Positions 5,641-53,526 of a stretch of 64,000 nt of DNA are shown here, piece by piece; position 1 is the first letter of the stretch; every line of letters starts with the position of its first letter. The notes beneath the pieces were generated by a model. The model saw only the letters and a program-made list of their open reading frames with translations. It searched no databases and was not told the origin of the DNA. Location: the sequence record OK040170.1, one strand, 5' to 3'. A program made the position numbers and the translations under genes.

Positions 5641-5645
5641 ACCAC

Positions 5646-5786
5646 TCTCTTTAATTCATTTTTTACGTCGTGTCTTATAGTGTGCTAAAAGCACACAAGA
5701 CATCTCGCAAGAGGGGTCACGGCGGAGCCTGTGACTATTAGGGGTTAGAATGACTGAGGAATGTAATGACGAAAGGAATTCCCTAA
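5646..5786 (+). repeat. dispersed structured module, copy 1 of 3
   Basis: ATTTTTTACGT, then GGTCAC-GGC-gga-GCC-T-GTGACT (5715-5736), ATTA, then TAGGG...CCCTA enclosing GACTGAGGAATGTAATGACGAAAGGA (5752-5777). Confidence 0.85.
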
Positions 5787-5853
5787 GAGTACGGCTAGCT
5801 AAATACCCTAGATGAATTAGTGTGATTATAACTCAATAATCCACGTCTAAGAG

Positions 5854-6213
5854 ATGGAAAATACGATGAGAAGAAACCAAGCAGTAATCGATAAATCAAT
5901 CGAAGAACTGAACGATCTGTGCATTGGTGGCCCAGAGACTAAAGAGAAAACTCTGGCAATCAGCTCTGCTATGATGCAGATCTTTACCAACGGCTTAGGC
6001 TTGATGGTAAGTTCCTCTGAGGAAGGGAAGTATCCTCTGGGCAAATACGATTCATTCGCTGAAGTAAGTTTAGCGTCTAGTCGTATCTACGGTCAGATCG
6101 TAGTCTTCCGTGTACGCATTGGTTGGCAGGACACGACGTTCACTCGATTCGTGTTCCTGGATGAAGCAGGTGCTCCAGCCGCAGCCGTTGATGATATCGG
6201 TACTCCGTACTAA
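5854..6213 (+). CDS. hypothetical protein (119 aa)
   Basis: First ORF after module copy 1; followed by a terminator hairpin. Confidence 0.7.
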   Translation: MENTMRRNQAVIDKSIEELNDLCIGGPETKEKTLAISSAMMQIFTNGLGLMVSSSEEGKYPLGKYDSFAEVSLASSRIYGQIVVFRVRIGWQDTTFTRFVFLDEAGAPAAAVDDIGTPY

Positions 6214-9665: not shown

Positions 9666-9754
9666 GTTACGTAAAAAATAAACTCATCATCGTAGTCTAT
9701 GTACGGGATTCTCTTTAGAGTATCCTTTAGTTCATTAACGAAGAGAGATTTCTC

Positions 9755-13078: not shown

Positions 13079-13184
13079 GGGCTACCTCCTAGTAGGATCC
13101 GTCAGGTTATTTTTTACATCTCTTCTGAAGATGTGTAGCAATTACACAGATAAAGTAGTTTTTTCTTATCAGTAGTGAGGAAAT

Positions 13185-22356: not shown

Positions 22357-22388
22357 CGTTTACCTCATGGGTAAAGGGTTAGGTAATT

Positions 22389-22563: not shown

Positions 22564-22644
22564 AGATAAACAAAGATGTTTGTTCTTCAACTAATTACTT
22601 TCATTGCAATGAAACAATAAACAATGCTTTTAAGGAGCAAAACA

Positions 22645-24477
22645 ATGAGTCTGTCTGACCAAAACGTTAACGAAGCTAAAAACACCCAACGCGCTGCAGC
22701 TGCACAGGGTCAACAACCTCGCGAACAAGCAGGCCGTCGTCTGAACACCAACATCTTCGAAAGCGGCCAACTGGTACAAGCCGGCGTTTCCGGTAACGAA
22801 CTGACCACTTTCATCGAGCGCTTCAACGCTTATCACGACGCAAACAAAGCTGCTCTGTCTGCCGGCGGTCAACTGACCTGGGCCGTAATCCCAGCATCTT
22901 CTGGCGAAACCAAAATGAAGCTGGATGCAGCTGTCGTTGTCGGTAAAGCCACTACCTCCGAAGGCGTGATCACCACTGCACTGACTCTGCTGTTCACCGG
23001 CGGCCAGCCTCTGCCGAAGCAAGTCGTAGAGATCAGCAACCGTAACGAGCGTCAGTACTCTGCCGTCGCGAACGATCAGTTCACCGAAGCGTATCAGAAA
23101 AAGCTGACCGAAATCATCAACCGCAAAGCGCCTTACATGGGCGAAGCTGAAAACATCGTTCTGATGGGCGCCGTGGCAGTAACCAACGCGCAACTGAGCG
23201 AAGCGAAGTGTGAAGACCTGATCATCTCCGCGGTGAACTCCGTCTTCGGTTACCTGGGCAACATGCTGCGTACCGAACACTTCTCTCTGACCGATGCGAT
23301 CGACTCTCAGCGCAGCGAGTTCGTTTCTCGCGTGATCTACAATCAGGGCGATGCCCATGACGAAATCACCGAGCGTCCTCGTCGTCGCGATCTGGCCGTC
23401 GAAGTATCTCTGGCAACCAAAGGTCAGCGTAACCGTGTGTCTAACGCACTGGAAAACGCTGAAGGCGCAATGGACATCGCAACCATCGAAGGTTACGTTG
23501 ATCTGCTGTTCCTGGGTCGTCCGGATGGTCAGCAACGTCGTTCTCGCTACCGTTCTCAGCGTGAAGAAGACGCAGCGCGTCAGATCTACGGTAAAAACCT
23601 GGTCATCACCCACATGAAGCACGAAGCTTCTCCTGAGCACCTGTGCCTGGCACTGGCCCAGATCCCTGTACTGATCAACGAAAACGTTCTGACCACTGGC
23701 CTGAAGCCAGCCGGCGACAACGCGAAACTGCGTACTCCGGTTGCTCTGACCTACGAGCTGGACGAAGAGTTCGAAGCAGTGCCGGACGTTCTGGACGATG
23801 CAGAGTGGGCTGACCTGACCGACGTAGTGATCCAACCGGATCAGAACTTCGTAACCGTACTGATCGACGAAACCGGCATCACCACCCAACAGCAGAAACT
23901 GCTGCTGCAAGCGACCGACCGCATGAACCCGAACCGTGACCTGTTCGCAGACATGCTGGTACAAGCGGCTGATAACCTGACCAAAGGCGCCTTCATGGAA
24001 AGCCTGGGCGCAGCGCGTATCAACCCGCTGGATATCGGCGAACGTCAAGACCGTATCGTCCTGCTGGGCGAATGGACTGACGACCGTGGCCAAATCCGTT
24101 CTCTGACCGAAATCGACTACTACGCGATCCTGACTGCCTTCGGCCAGAAAGATCGTCGCATCGTAGAAGACTGGGATCGTTGCCAGAACGATGTAAGCCT
24201 GCCGATCGAAATCCGTCTGGCGAAAATGGAAGAGATCATCGACCAATTCACCGGCGGTTCCTACCGCATCACCGGTCACGGTGTTCCAGTACTGGTTAAC
24301 ACCCAGTGGCTGTTCACTCTGACCAACGCCGCAGAGCGCGCTGGTATGGTTACTCAGGCTGACGGTATCTATCAGGATACTCGTTTCCGTCGTGGTTTCC
24401 AATCTCAGTACGCTACTTCCGGTTACGCCGGCAAAGCGTTCCGTATGCGTGGTACTGGTCGCAACGATTACTTCTAA
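22645..24477 (+). CDS. chmA: chimallin, phage nuclear shell protein
   Basis: About 610 aa with extreme codon bias, AAGGAG SD before ATG 22645, low-complexity N-terminal arm; sits immediately upstream of the nvRNAP beta' N-terminal gene, the conserved chimallin position. Confidence 0.8.
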   Translation: MSLSDQNVNEAKNTQRAAAAQGQQPREQAGRRLNTNIFESGQLVQAGVSGNELTTFIERFNAYHDANKAALSAGGQLTWAVIPASSGETKMKLDAAVVVGKATTSEGVITTALTLLFTGGQPLPKQVVEISNRNERQYSAVANDQFTEAYQKKLTEIINRKAPYMGEAENIVLMGAVAVTNAQLSEAKCEDLIISAVNSVFGYLGNMLRTEHFSLTDAIDSQRSEFVSRVIYNQGDAHDEITERPRRRDLAVEVSLATKGQRNRVSNALENAEGAMDIATIEGYVDLLFLGRPDGQQRRSRYRSQREEDAARQIYGKNLVITHMKHEASPEHLCLALAQIPVLINENVLTTGLKPAGDNAKLRTPVALTYELDEEFEAVPDVLDDAEWADLTDVVIQPDQNFVTVLIDETGITTQQQKLLLQATDRMNPNRDLFADMLVQAADNLTKGAFMESLGAARINPLDIGERQDRIVLLGEWTDDRGQIRSLTEIDYYAILTAFGQKDRRIVEDWDRCQNDVSLPIEIRLAKMEEIIDQFTGGSYRITGHGVPVLVNTQWLFTLTNAAERAGMVTQADGIYQDTRFRRGFQSQYATSGYAGKAFRMRGTGRNDYF

Positions 24478-24578: not shown

Positions 24579-25856
24579 TTGGGTGTTTATCTGTTAAATC
24601 CGGACTATGACAGGGATATCGCAGCTCTGCCTCGTCCTCCAATTATCCTCAATGATATCGACCCGGCGCATTATGAAGGTACTGATCCAGTCAAAGAACT
24701 GACCATGACCGAATATAGCGACGACTTCATTGAGACATTACCGGCGTGTGAGTGTGGCCACACCCATGGTCGGTATAATTCATCGAACGACCCAAGTATC
24801 CCTAACACGGTATGTCCGAAATGTCAGACTGAAGTGATGAGCCCAATCGATCGAGGGTTTAAATCTTCTGTGTGGCTGAGAGCACCTAACGGTGTTCGTG
24901 CGTTCATCCGTATCAATGCGTTGGTCATGTTGCTGAAGAACTTCACCCAGGAGAACTTCTCGGCAATTGAATGGCTCTGTAACACCAAATATAAGCCAAC
25001 CAACGATACCAGTGCCACGTTCCGTCGGTTCAAAGAACTGAACATCCCTCGTGGTTATAATCACTTTATCGAGAACTTCGATGACATCCTGGGCGCGATG
25101 GTAGATAGTAAGATATTCAAGCCATCTGCTAACCGTAACGATGCGTTGGTGTATTTTGATAAGTTCAGGGATCTCCTGTTCCCAACCGTCCTCCCGCTGC
25201 CATCTCGCCGGTCTATCATCACGGAGCTTAGTAACAAAACTCGCTTCTGTGCTGAAGGCTATGCAGATGTCGTCGATGCTGCACGAGCTATTTATAGCTT
25301 GGTCGGTAAAGATGAACCGCGTTATCAAGTGACTAAGGAATATCACGTATTCCGAGCACTGATGATGTTGGTGAAGTATCGGGAATATATCGACAAGAAC
25401 ATCCTGGGTAAGAAAGAAGGCTGGTTCCGTAAACAGATCTATGGATCTCGTACCGGGCCAACTTATCGTGGCGTAGTAACGTCTATCGCGGGATCTCACG
25501 ACTATGAAGAAATGCATATGCCGTGGGGGATTGCGTTAGGGGTTTATCACACCCACTTGATCGGAAAGTTAGTTCGTCGCGGATTCACCATCCAAGACTC
25601 TGAGGATCTACTGATCTCTTCAGTAGGGCGTTATAATCCGCTGATCTCCACTCTGCTGGATGAGCTGATTGACGAATCTCCGTTTACGACAATTAGTGGT
25701 AAACGTGGACTGCCTCAGTTGCTGGGTCGAAATCCAACGTTGAACTTACGTTCGATTCAGAACCTGTTTGTCACCAAAATCAAAAGGGACGTGCACGACA
25801 ATACTATCGGCCTATCGCTGCTAGTGCTGAAGGCTCCGAACTGTGACTTCGACGGT
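24579..25856 (+). CDS. non-virion RNA polymerase beta' N-terminal subunit (phiKZ gp55-like), exon 1
   Basis: Zn-binding CECG...CPKC, RKQIYGSR, GRNPTL and NCDFDG; the catalytic motif is cut after Gly. Confidence 0.88.
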
Positions 25857-26152
25857 AGAAGTAACCCAACTAAGTTGCCGTCTTAAAACTCCTTTAACTG
25901 CTGGGAACTCTTGCTAGGTAGATTGGCTACAACGTAACTGGAAACGGTAAGCGTGAATGCTTGAAAACAATCTAATAGAGACAATCAGCATCCAAGCTCC
26001 TGTAAAATGGAGAAGGTTCAACGACTATCGAAAGCACGTAACACGGATGTGGTAAACGTAGTGAGTAGAGTAGGGGAAACCCGAAACGGGGAGCACTTGA
26101 ACGATTCAAGTGAAGATATAGTCTGTTAAGTACTCGGTGCATTTAGCCGAGG
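25857..26152 (+). mobile_element. group I intron (phage IA2-like), 296 nt, no endonuclease ORF
   Basis: P AACTGCTGGGAA (25896), Q AATCAGCA (25983), R TTCAACGACTAT (26017), S AAGATATAGTCT (26113); P1 GACGGT/GCCGTC with U-G at the 5' site; P9 CTCGG/CCGAG then terminal G26152. Confidence 0.9.
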
Positions 26153-47183: not shown

Positions 47184-47191
47184 TTAGTTAG

Positions 47192-47316
47192 CTCTCATTT
47201 TTTACGTACGTTTCAATTATGTGTCAGAACTTGGTCACGGCCCGGAGGGTCTGTGACTATTAGGGGTTTTAGAGTGAACTAGGATGACCAAAGGGAAGAC
47301 GAAGTGAGCTCCCTAA
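47192..47316 (+). repeat. dispersed structured module, copy 2 of 3
   Basis: CTCTCATTTTTTACGT, GGTCAC-GGCCC-gga-GGGTC-T-GTGACT (47233-47258), ATTA, TAGGG(47261)...CCCTA(47315) enclosing a GA-rich hairpin. Confidence 0.85.
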
Positions 47317-47435
47317 ACGCGTGGATAATTAACCCCATTTAAACTAAATTGATATTCACTGGTAGATTAAGTTCTACTGGTGATTATTGATCTATTTTGT
47401 AAAATTACCAATATACCTCCATTGGATCTTAGGTA

Positions 47436-47443
47436 TATATTAC
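47436..47443 (+). promoter_or_regulatory. TATATTAC early promoter
   Basis: GGTATATATTACCAGATTGA. Confidence 0.7.
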
Positions 47444-47463
47444 CAGATTGAATAGATTACTAC

Positions 47464-48027
47464 TTGGATAACAGGAGAAGTAAATTGAAACACTTATCAA
47501 TTACCGCTGGTTGGGGTAGCGTTAAGAACACTACGATCATCAGCTACGAAGATAACGATACTTTATCTCGTGGATTACTCCATACGTTCATTAACGAAGC
47601 AAGTGGAAGTTTCTGCCTGGATCATCTGGAAGCTATCGCTAAAGTGGTACGCGGTATTGTTAGCGGTGAACTGCGCACAGATGAGGACATCGTTGTAGTC
47701 CCTTCTTATCTCACTGTTTCATACAGCCAAGAACGTTCAGTTTGGACCAGGGCCCGTTACCAGATTTTCTCAGGTGGCGAGTTAATCTGGAAAGGGATTT
47801 TCGCATTAGATAGTAATGGCGACTTCGATACTGCATGGATGGTGCGCGCTTGGGTATCGAAAGCACTTATTCGCGTCGACCATAATTTGATAGGCTATGC
47901 TGCTGACATCATGGAACGTGTCCGGAGTAGCGATAACCTCAAGAAAGAATTGGTAATAGAGCGCTTTGTCTTTGAAGGCAAAGAGATTATTGTCAACGTG
48001 TCTAAAAGCTACCAAGGAGCTAAGTAA
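47464..48027 (+). CDS. hypothetical protein
   Basis: TTG start; an alternative TTG behind AGGAG at about 47485. Confidence 0.7.
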   Translation: MDNRRSKLKHLSITAGWGSVKNTTIISYEDNDTLSRGLLHTFINEASGSFCLDHLEAIAKVVRGIVSGELRTDEDIVVVPSYLTVSYSQERSVWTRARYQIFSGGELIWKGIFALDSNGDFDTAWMVRAWVSKALIRVDHNLIGYAADIMERVRSSDNLKKELVIERFVFEGKEIIVNVSKSYQGAK

Positions 48028-48883: not shown

Positions 48884-50038
48884 TTGAAAGTGAAAAAAGA
48901 AAAGATGGTTAAAGTAGAAATCGTAGTTAATGGTCAACATCGCCTTACTCGTATTTTTGACGTCGATAACCTTAACGCTGTGTCGGATGCCATTGCGGAA
49001 AACAAAGAAGTATTCTCCGGTGACGAATTCAAACAATTAACCGATAACTACATGGAAAGCGTCAAGTGGCGTATTCGCGATGGCTTTATCGGTGTAATTG
49101 GACTCGGTACTTCACTGAACATTTCCGCCTGCGTATCCAAACCTACCGATCTGGAACTACAGCGCGTTAGCGTTTCTCTCCGAGCCCCTGGGAATCTATC
49201 GACTCGATTGATCCGCACGATCTGCTATCGTGGTGAGATCAACGATATGTTCTCGCTGTTTAAAGTTAACTTACTTCGTAGACTGTCTTTGACGGCCAGG
49301 GCGTTTTTGAGCTCACTTAAGTACGAAGACTGGAGCAAACTACGTTCTGGGGATAATGAGTTAGCCCTCATGGGGAGTGACTACACGCTGGTAGTTACAC
49401 CGGTAGGCCAACCTGCTGAGAAAATCGTTCAGATCTTCACGCCTGTGGAAATCAGAGAAATCATCGAGAGCCCGCAGGCAATTAAGAAGGATACTATCGA
49501 TTTGCCTCCGGAATTACTTGAGGCGATCGGTACGGTTTCTGAGTTACATCGCCGTAAAGCTCAGAACGGTGGTCGTTGGGAACTTCGGGAATTAGCTAAC
49601 CCTGAATTACAATTGAAGGTATGTTCGGCCGCTGTTTCGCCAATCACGGATTGGGCCAGTAATACACTGCAATATCTCGTGTCCCCACGTCGGGTTGGTA
49701 AACATTCGGTGGAAGAGGTATTCAAAAAGCTATCGGCTCGGCACGAGGAACTTCAGGCACTATGTAAACGCGGCGAAGACATGAGTAAGGTCATCGTCTA
49801 TCGTGGCTCCGCCGAGGCCAATGGTAAGAAGACCAACTTCGTTTTGACCTACGATATGGTCTACGGTAAACAAGAGGGGTTTAGCTGGGTCATCGACCGC
49901 GTAGCTCGCCAGATTAAACGTAACTTGGGCGAAAACATTTCTCCGCCTATCCTCTATCATGCGTTCCATATCACTAACTTGGGGCACTGGGTAGAATTAG
50001 TCCCTGGACTTAATATCCGCATTGAAGCTGTACTTTAA
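48884..50038 (+). CDS. hypothetical protein (384 aa)
   Basis: TTG start behind GGAG. Confidence 0.75.
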   Translation: MKVKKEKMVKVEIVVNGQHRLTRIFDVDNLNAVSDAIAENKEVFSGDEFKQLTDNYMESVKWRIRDGFIGVIGLGTSLNISACVSKPTDLELQRVSVSLRAPGNLSTRLIRTICYRGEINDMFSLFKVNLLRRLSLTARAFLSSLKYEDWSKLRSGDNELALMGSDYTLVVTPVGQPAEKIVQIFTPVEIREIIESPQAIKKDTIDLPPELLEAIGTVSELHRRKAQNGGRWELRELANPELQLKVCSAAVSPITDWASNTLQYLVSPRRVGKHSVEEVFKKLSARHEELQALCKRGEDMSKVIVYRGSAEANGKKTNFVLTYDMVYGKQEGFSWVIDRVARQIKRNLGENISPPILYHAFHITNLGHWVELVPGLNIRIEAVL

Positions 50039-50696: not shown

Positions 50697-50700
50697 TAAT

Positions 50701-50830
50701 CTCTCATTTTTTACGTCACTTCTCTTTAGTTTGTCAAAACAATACCACTCAGGTCACGGCCGTAGGCCTGTGACTAATAAGTACCCGTATGACTGAAGAA
50801 CGTAGTGATGAAAGGAATACATCTTGGGTA
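50701..50830 (+). repeat. dispersed structured module, copy 3 of 3
   Basis: CTCTCATTTTTTACGTC, GGTCAC-GGCC-gta-GGCC-T-GTGACT (50752-50775), AATA, TACCC(50782)...GGGTA(50830) enclosing GACTGAAGAACGTAGTGATGAAAGGA (50791-50816). Confidence 0.85.
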
Positions 50831-50882
50831 AAAAGAGAGTTAAGTAAGGTTAAATTAACTCTATTGATAAAGAGTAATAATC

Positions 50883-53515: not shown

Positions 53516-53526
53516 TTTAGATCTTT

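Follow-up and report, generated by a model that had tools for sequence, protein, structure and literature searches.

A repeated intergenic element with a GA-rich hairpin arm in Serratia phage BUCT660 and its Moabitevirus relatives

What is a short hairpin rich in tandem G·A steps doing in the intergenic DNA of a large phage, and why should its copies differ only at positions that pair with one another? We addressed this question in a stretch of 64,000 nucleotides (nt), here called the window, which is identical to and shares its coordinates with Serratia phage BUCT660 (OK040170.1, 272.7 kb, genus Moabitevirus). A first-pass annotation of the window had described 26-mers at 5752–5777 and 50791–50816, and these stand as quoted, with four differences that form two covarying pairs (7/19, G-C versus A-T; 11/15, T-A versus C-G). 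It had also pointed to a longer second copy, which is located at 47272–47311. We found that the hairpin is the lineage-specific GA-rich arm of a larger structured element that is real, selected and undescribed, and for which fold, strand, copy number, position, orthology and selection are established.

The window encodes a nuclear-shell protein (22624–24477) and several split RNA polymerase β-like subunits, which identifies BUCT660 as a nucleus-forming jumbo phage with multisubunit polymerases of its own; nearly all genes lie on the plus strand. Alignment of three intergenic regions revealed a common element of 130–200 nt, co-oriented with the genes in every case. Each copy presents the same parts in the same order, namely an AT-rich, promoter-like box (TCATTTTTTACGT), a TATG-like motif, a first hairpin (P1), a linker, and a stem (P2) that encloses the GA-rich hairpin (P3). 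The hairpin pattern that forms P1, GGTCACGGC-loop-CTGTGACTA, occurs three times in the window against 0.00 expected, and a covariance model built on P1 and P3 scores the three copies at 73–89 bits, with the next best window site at 10.7 bits. Using this model on four complete Moabitevirus genomes, we recovered exactly three per genome, and each reads in the sense direction of the genes. Totoro (ON287372), the most diverged Moabitevirus, likewise carries three. The features of the copies are listed here, with lengths in base pairs (bp) and MFE denoting the minimum-free-energy fold.

5641–5865, plus strand: element region of copy 1; the downstream start codon is taken as 5866, which is kept in Totoro.
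5656–5668, plus strand: promoter-like box of copy 1, TCATTTTTTACGT, AT-rich; a TAG-TGTG motif follows at about 5678–5684.
5716–5735, plus strand: P1 of copy 1, 5 + 3 bp, with bulged U5730 and a GGA triloop; the linker UAUUA (5736–5740) comes next.
5739–5810, plus strand: P2 of copy 1, UAGGG (5739–5743) with CCCUA (5806–5810), enclosing P3.
5782–5786, plus strand: CCUAA, alternative proximal partner for P2 of copy 1, read from the sequence.
5748–5781, plus strand: P3 of copy 1, a GA-rich irregular hairpin, from alignment, pair counts and the RNAfold MFE structure; includes the 26-mer at 5752–5777.
47184–47484, plus strand: element region of copy 2, from the alignment of intergenic regions.
47195–47207, plus strand: promoter-like box of copy 2; an ATG-TG motif follows at about 47219–47223.
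47234–47257, plus strand: P1 of copy 2, with an extended upper stem GGCCC/GGGUC (one G·U) and a GGA loop.
47260–47336, plus strand: P2 of copy 2, GGGGUU (47263–47268) with AACCCC (47331–47336), from the MFE fold.
47260–47264 with 47312–47316, plus strand: alternative P2 of copy 2, UUAGG with CCUAA.
47272–47311, plus strand: P3 of copy 2, longer than in copies 1 and 3, closed by an AAA loop and containing four tandem GA/AG steps, from the alignment.
47356–47383, plus strand: terminator-like 11-bp hairpin of copy 2, between the element and the gene starting at 47485.
50697–50882, plus strand: element region of copy 3, from the alignment of intergenic regions.
50704–50716, plus strand: promoter-like box of copy 3; a TAG-TTTG motif follows at about 50727–50733.
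50753–50774, plus strand: P1 of copy 3, with a GGCC/GGCC upper stem and a GUA loop; the linker UAAUAAG comes next.
50782–50830, plus strand: P2 of copy 3, UACCC (50782–50786) with GGGUA (50826–50830), from the MFE fold, enclosing P3.
50787–50820, plus strand: P3 of copy 3, a GA-rich hairpin that includes the 26-mer at 50791–50816.

P3 is an irregular hairpin of 34–40 nt, with the 26-mers forming its top. Copy 1 reads GAAU-GA-CU-GA-G-GA-AU-[GUA]-AU-GA-C-GA(A)A-G-GA-AUUC, so that in copies 1 and 3 a basal stem of 4 bp is followed by GA/GA, 2 bp, GA facing GA and an extra A, 1 bp, GA/GA, 2 bp and the GUA loop, while copy 2 has one more basal pair and one more GA/GA step near the tip. Over five distinct sequences, 94% of the cells are paired and double-sided changes are present in 7 of 17 pairs. 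The observed pairing or covariation score was reached by none of 500 shuffles, and controls in which the pairing was slid gave about 30% paired cells and zero double changes. Among the Watson–Crick pairs, seven of nine have changed on both sides, with the four GA dinucleotides invariant, and by our own count this covariation needs at least eight independent double substitutions. The pairs at 7/19 and 11/15 also hold in the diverged Totoro, where copy 1 has A-U at 7/19, C-G in place of A-U at 10/16 and, two pairs lower down, C-G in place of U-A. A metagenome variant (G to A at 47308) converts a U·G pair of the copy 2 P3 to U-A. Conserved 5′-GA-3′ faces 5′-GA-3′ between Watson–Crick pairs that covary across the five sequences, as in a tandem G·A helix, with a putative sheared geometry. 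The earlier proposal of a structure under selection is borne out; the fold is strand-specific and its tandem G·A steps are invariant.

With RNA parameters, the minimum-energy fold of P3 is the covariation fold for copy 1, copy 2 (−8.9 kcal/mol, z-score −2.5) and Totoro copy 1, and for copy 3 when folded in context. RNAfold therefore finds the hairpin for three of four sequences on their own, and the expectation that ordinary folding programs would miss it is not borne out. No P3 folded with DNA parameters (0 kcal/mol), and the minus strand gave no fold with RNA or DNA parameters. On that strand the G·U pairs become C·A and the G·A steps become C·U/U·C mismatches; with its G·U pairs and G·A steps, the fold works on the sense strand only. 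These models favour RNA over single-stranded DNA as the folding molecule.

The remaining domains are conserved in different ways. P1 has the general form of 5 bp, a bulged U, 3–5 bp and a GNA triloop. Its pairing is 100% across seven sequences; the two basal pairs covary (GC/CG and UA/GC/AU are seen), and neither the inner 6 bp nor the bulge shows any change. The linker that follows is UAUUA, or UAAUAAG in copy 3. P2 is a stem of 5–8 bp, its loop filled by P3 in Moabitevirus, and it is flipped among copies, with UAGGG/CCCUA in copies 1 and 2 and UACCC/GGGUA in copy 3. From P1 to the end of P2, copy 3 is identical at 79 of 79 nt between BUCT660 and Totoro; the next downstream protein is 41.6% identical. 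Possible readings that we considered are CsrA-type GGA sites, for which the GGA motifs differ from copy to copy, and Hfq or RNase E sites in the linker.

Outside Moabitevirus, the model of P1 and P3 also matches the Klebsiella jumbo phage FBKp24 (NC_061421, E = 8.6e-4), and the element is also found in Centimanus, in KpLz-2_45 and its relatives, and in one metagenome contig. These Klebsiella-type copies share the gene position of copy 1, after a protein of ~131–136 amino acids (aa) and before a 215–218 aa protein and a transglycosylase. Identity between the Moabitevirus and Klebsiella groups is ~30% for the syntenic 215-aa protein and ~35% for the nuclear-shell protein. P1 of the Klebsiella type retains CACGGC-GAA-GCC-U-GUG exactly, its basal pairs changing from GU/AC to CG/CG or CA/UG, and the linker is retained. 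P2 is a plain short-loop hairpin, with GGGG/CCCC, GGUGAC/GUCACC, GACC/GGUC or GGGC/GCCC as its stem (the last three with a GUA loop), and two more hairpins follow, one of which (P4) shows double-sided changes in 6 of 9 pairs. The GA hairpin is absent. A core-only covariance model found one copy in FBKp24 and one in KpLz-2_45, and no copy in PhiEaH1, PCH45 or SPLA10.

Since the Klebsiella-type copies have P1 and P2 and lack P3, the GA hairpin is not the stand-alone element it was first taken for; it is a Moabitevirus-specific insertion into the loop of P2, around a core that exists without it in the Klebsiella jumbo phages. Judged from these comparisons, the ancestral state is a single copy without P3, with Moabitevirus having grown P3 inside the P2 loop and carrying the promoter–leader unit three times. 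In IMG/VR, a loose P1 pattern gave 117 matches, all attributable to chance, specific P1 and P3 patterns gave none, and the core pattern gave FBKp24 and one chance match only. Pattern scans of Joint Genome Institute (JGI) metagenomes gave no match at first and one true orthologue in a later scan. Against Rfam 15, the three copies had no match at gathering score. At permissive thresholds copies 1 and 2 returned nothing at E of 5 or less, and copy 3 and FBKp24 returned noise only (E of 0.29 or more, bits far under the cut-offs). With its occurrence limited to one small clade, the element is a narrowly distributed new RNA motif and belongs with the conserved phage non-coding RNA motifs.

We then considered what the box implies for the position of the element. 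ATTTTTTACR occurs 11 times in the Moabite genome, versus 0 for the reversed control, and most sites are intergenic with TATG or a one-base variant 12–17 nt downstream. In the three copies, TAG-T(A/G/T)TG stands 12–17 nt after the box, and P1 begins another 12–32 nt on. Boxes with a TATG-like motif likewise stand at 22384, ahead of the nuclear-shell gene, and at 53522, ahead of the tRNA array, and in FBKp24 and Centimanus the box and TATGTT directly precede P1. Sigma-70 promoters are not enriched. According to a published review (PMC7598289), the early operons of every jumbo phage that encodes polymerases are preceded by an AT-rich motif of ~10 nt, and in phiKZ an AT-rich element near −24 is paired with a TATG located where transcription starts. 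The nuclear-shell protein ChmA is produced early (PMC12908238). From the box counts, the TATG spacing, these published classes and the early shell gene, the box is probably a phage promoter, likely of the early class, which would place P1 10–32 nt into the predicted transcript.

Further T6AC boxes lie in the window without the structured element, at 13107, 22384, 36011 and 53522 on the plus strand and at 9669 on the minus strand. Three of these five have a TATG-like motif 12–17 nt downstream, one precedes the nuclear-shell gene by ~230 nt, and another is directly before the tRNA array; they make up a candidate phage promoter class. FBKp24 also carries an annotated promoter at 94603–94625 of NC_061421, AATAACCCTCACTAAACAGGAGA, which is a PhagePromoter software prediction and which we take to resemble a T3-type promoter. 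No such T3-like sequence is found in the window beyond chance.

The reading we prefer, with a probability of about one half, is that P1, P2 and P3 form a 5′ leader RNA of phage transcripts, in which the P1 core is protein-bound and P3 is a peripheral extension. Transcription would start at a phage-type promoter composed of the AT-rich box and the TATG-like motif 12–17 nt later, and the leader would head three transcription units in Moabitevirus and one in the related Klebsiella jumbo phages. The RNA would fold in order, with P1 followed by the single-stranded UAUUA linker and then by P2, whose sequence is free while its pairing is kept; in Moabitevirus the loop of P2 would have grown to a rod-like helix in which invariant tandem G·A steps alternate with covarying Watson–Crick pairs. 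P1 keeps its inner stem, bulge and loop type unchanged across genera whose proteins are only ~30% identical, whereas P2, P3 and P4 keep only their pairing. This pattern suggests that a trans-acting factor, most probably a protein of the phage, reads the sequence of P1 and the linker. This factor may set the fate of the downstream message through read-through of the leader hairpins, stability or translation. No paralogy was found among the genes downstream of the three copies, and the presence of three copies before three unrelated units suggests that the units are co-regulated. P3 may provide a second protein contact surface, or a brace that stiffens the fold. A role in protein recognition, as suggested earlier, is still plausible. 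Transcription, the transcript start, protein binding and the controlled target are the parts of this account that we infer.

The nearest working analogy for such a leader would be one of the nut/put or operator type. The lambda nut (boxA/boxB) and HK022 put sites are short, cis-acting RNA elements, present two to three times per genome shortly after an early promoter, and consist of small hairpins with purine-rich loops together with a conserved single-stranded stretch. The BUCT660 element is likewise repeated and lies downstream of a probable promoter, putatively of the early class. However, nut and put have no sequence or Rfam similarity to it, its transcription would be by the split multisubunit polymerase of the phage itself, and a terminator-like hairpin follows copy 2 only. 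The BUCT660 element also has no known N-like partner, and nothing in nut or put corresponds to its GA-rich rod. Stabiliser hairpins offer a second comparison. These are stable hairpins of enterobacterial and phage mRNAs, as in the ompA leader, situated ~10–30 nt from the mRNA 5′ end and followed by an AU-rich single strand, and P1 is similarly placed near a presumed 5′ end and followed by an AU-rich single strand. No particular sequence is needed in stabiliser hairpins, whereas 6 bp, the bulge and the loop type of P1 are invariant across genera, and the distance from P1 to the presumed 5′ end is too variable.

For P3 itself, the invariant 5′-GA-3′ opposite 5′-GA-3′ between Watson–Crick pairs recalls the K-turn, loop E and the hammerhead, and UGAUGA...CUGA in copy 3 recalls box C′/D′, but a single helix that stacks three to five such steps is unusual. 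A K-turn or box C/D assignment was rejected because the C′/D′ register (columns 68/47 and 69/46) breaks in copy 1, Totoro copy 1 and copy 2; the covarying register is instead 50/68, 47/72 and 46/73, and neither strand has a three-base bulge then GA. The hammerhead was set aside because Totoro copy 1 has C at the U4 equivalent, C or U takes the place of A14, GAAA is displaced from stem II by three additional bases, and Rfam gives no match. For the sarcin–ricin/loop E motif, the middle loop has UGA, CGA or UA facing GAAA, GAAG or GAA, and there is no AGUA strand.

Several observations weigh against the protein-bound leader. No expression platform is common to the three downstream regions, where a terminator-like hairpin is found after copy 2 only, and the ribosome-binding site is not consistently sequestered across copies. 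Public sequencing runs in which the region is present yielded nothing but DNA-like contigs of low depth. Among the neighbouring genes, Pfam and PHROGs assign a function only to the transglycosylase two genes downstream of copy 1. At the level of the fold, the proximal partner for P2 has been lost from copies 1 and 2 of Totoro (the distal one is kept), Totoro copy 2 has one non-compensated G·G, and a C-to-A change in vB_ParM-25 at 47311 affects the basal pair of the copy 2 P3 without compensation. The covariation comes from few sequences, namely three paralogues in two lineages and four orthologues, a set too small for R-scape statistics. On its own, P3 has only marginal stability (−2.4 to −8.9 kcal/mol), which suggests that it needs context, Mg2+ or a partner.

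The most serious alternative, which we consider unlikely though well worth weighing, is a trans-acting early small RNA, expressed from its own promoter or cut from a leader, that would draw off an RNA-binding protein of the host or the phage as a decoy or sponge, the tandem-GA rod being the bait. Each copy has its own promoter-like box, several copies would raise the dose, and the terminator-like hairpin before the gene at copy 2 would define an RNA of ~160 nt; the orthologous Moabite site is annotated as a terminator, and the hairpin is conserved in Totoro. The conserved block also stops at the 3′ strand of P2, past which BUCT660 and Totoro diverge, and phiKZ is reported to express non-coding RNAs (PMC13282480). 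However, no convincing terminator is present between the element and the next start codon at copies 1 and 3 or in the Klebsiella type, and no discrete RNA is seen in the low-depth, DNA-like contigs of the public runs. Nor did a scan of 185,579 bacterial genomes with the P1 core reveal a host sequence to mimic; it returned 26 scattered matches, all of them chance and without complementary flanks.

A more speculative proposal, which we hold to be rather improbable, is that the P1–P2 core is a signal specific to nucleus-forming jumbo phages. It could be an address tag on selected early messages for a shell- or vesicle-associated export or translation factor, or an early decoy RNA, its stacked GA rod titrating a host RNA-binding or defence protein. 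If this is true, Moabitevirus has tripled and enlarged the signal.

Still less probable is a metabolite- or ion-sensing riboswitch, in which P1, the linker and P2 would be the sensor and the downstream hairpins the expression platform. The 5′ leader position fits, as does a small core where invariant nucleotides stand beside covarying stems. Moreover, UUAACUCU in copy 3 is able to pair with an upstream arm or the ribosome-binding region, and GGGUA in Totoro copy 3 has a second possible downstream partner. These alternative pairings, however, are not shared among copies or lineages, the invariant part is a simple hairpin stem, not a multi-helix junction, no metabolic theme can be recognised among the downstream genes, and no Rfam family was found, permissive thresholds included.

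Only a little behind the riboswitch, and likewise doubtful, is a single-stranded DNA structure on a displaced or lagging strand, acting as a priming, origin, packaging or hairpin-promoter signal. GNA triloops and sheared G·A pairs also stabilise DNA mini-hairpins, covariation alone cannot separate RNA from DNA, and the copy number is low. Against this, P3 has no fold with DNA parameters, and the copies lie in gene orientation between a promoter-like box and a start codon in two genera, which makes single-stranded DNA, the medium first proposed, the less likely one. No GC-skew switch coincides with any of the three copies, and a replication-origin signal is not supported. N4-type enzymes are known to use DNA hairpin promoters, whereas the phage polymerases here are multisubunit and not of N4 type. 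The N4-type hairpin promoter was rejected as a candidate, given the split multisubunit polymerase of the window (to which the screen for an N4-like polymerase applied) and the missing DNA fold of P3.

A mobile regulatory cassette with no RNA function of its own, maintained as a recombination substrate, is very unlikely. The PeSLs of T4-type phages comprise a terminator then an early promoter, with sequences kept similar (PMC2839356, PMC4122927). The BUCT660 element shares with them a repeated unit of promoter and stem-loop, the setting of a large lytic phage, a place beside small genes of unknown function, and mosaic boundaries. Here, by contrast, the stem-loops come after the promoter, are multi-domain and show compensatory evolution, and there are only three copies. 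Promoter and stem-loops do recur at three places. Moabite has an HTH-domain gene inserted right after copy 2 (an extra gene at 49112–49988 of MK994515, following the terminator-like hairpin, versus window ~47384–47484), and a biofilm-metagenome contig switches to a Totoro-like flank just upstream of the copy 2 box, with the flank beginning at window 47185. The insertion and the switch place the cassette at a boundary of genome mosaicism. Recombination needs sequence identity, though, and so does not account for the compensatory double changes beside invariant GA steps; the single-copy cross-genus orthologue with covarying stems is also left unexplained.

The idea that the 26-mer encodes a small peptide starting MTEE can be dismissed, for although copies 1 and 3 open ATG ACT GAR GAA in a shared frame and two of the four differences are synonymous third-position changes (GAG to GAA and GAC to GAT), Totoro copy 1 has a stop at codon 5, copy 2 offers only 7–10 codons of a different peptide, the frames of copies 1 and 3 differ in length and tail, no ribosome-binding site is conserved, and the same changes preserve every base pair.

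The protein-bound leader is of interest since post-initiation gene regulation in nucleus-forming jumbo phages is almost unknown. Reviews of jumbo phages name one mRNA-export factor, leave non-coding RNAs unspecified and describe no structured leader (PMC13282480, PMC12908238). The element is a small, mutable RNA with a clear fold, and its invariant cross-genus core, together with the natural comparison of copies with and without P3, offers a practical way of identifying an RNA-binding regulator of such phages. The helix of three to five stacked tandem G·A steps, with compensatory change around them, is also a natural test case for non-Watson–Crick RNA architecture. The confinement of the family to one small clade limits its significance.

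Other features surround the copies. Copy 1 has an extra perfect hairpin at 5670–5700, GUGUGC-UAAAA-GCACAC extended by GUCUU/AAGAC, which lies across the presumed transcription start and is not found in copies 2 and 3. A loosely conserved stretch resembling (U/G)UGAWWNWNAC is present in all copies and orthologues (GUGAUUAUAAC, UUGAUAUUCAC, UUGAUAAAGAG and UUGAAUUUAAC), at 5820–5831, 47349–47359 and 50863–50873 in the window and also in the FBKp24 orthologue. The stretch precedes the start codon by 10–130 nt overall, with copy 2 (~125 nt) more distant than copies 1 and 3 (~10–45 nt).

The gene after copy 1 has two in-frame ATGs, at 5854 and 5866. The BUCT660 and Moabite records use the first, and vB_ParM-25 and Totoro use the equivalent of the second, which alone is conserved in Totoro. 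The 180-aa gene at 47485–48027 is annotated in BUCT660 and Moabite and unannotated in vB_ParM-25, which is 99.9% identical across the region. Elsewhere in the window, a group I intron is located at 25833–26142 (Rfam RF00028, 58 bits), and its start falls in the last 54 nt of the frame of an RNA polymerase β-like subunit (24579–25886).

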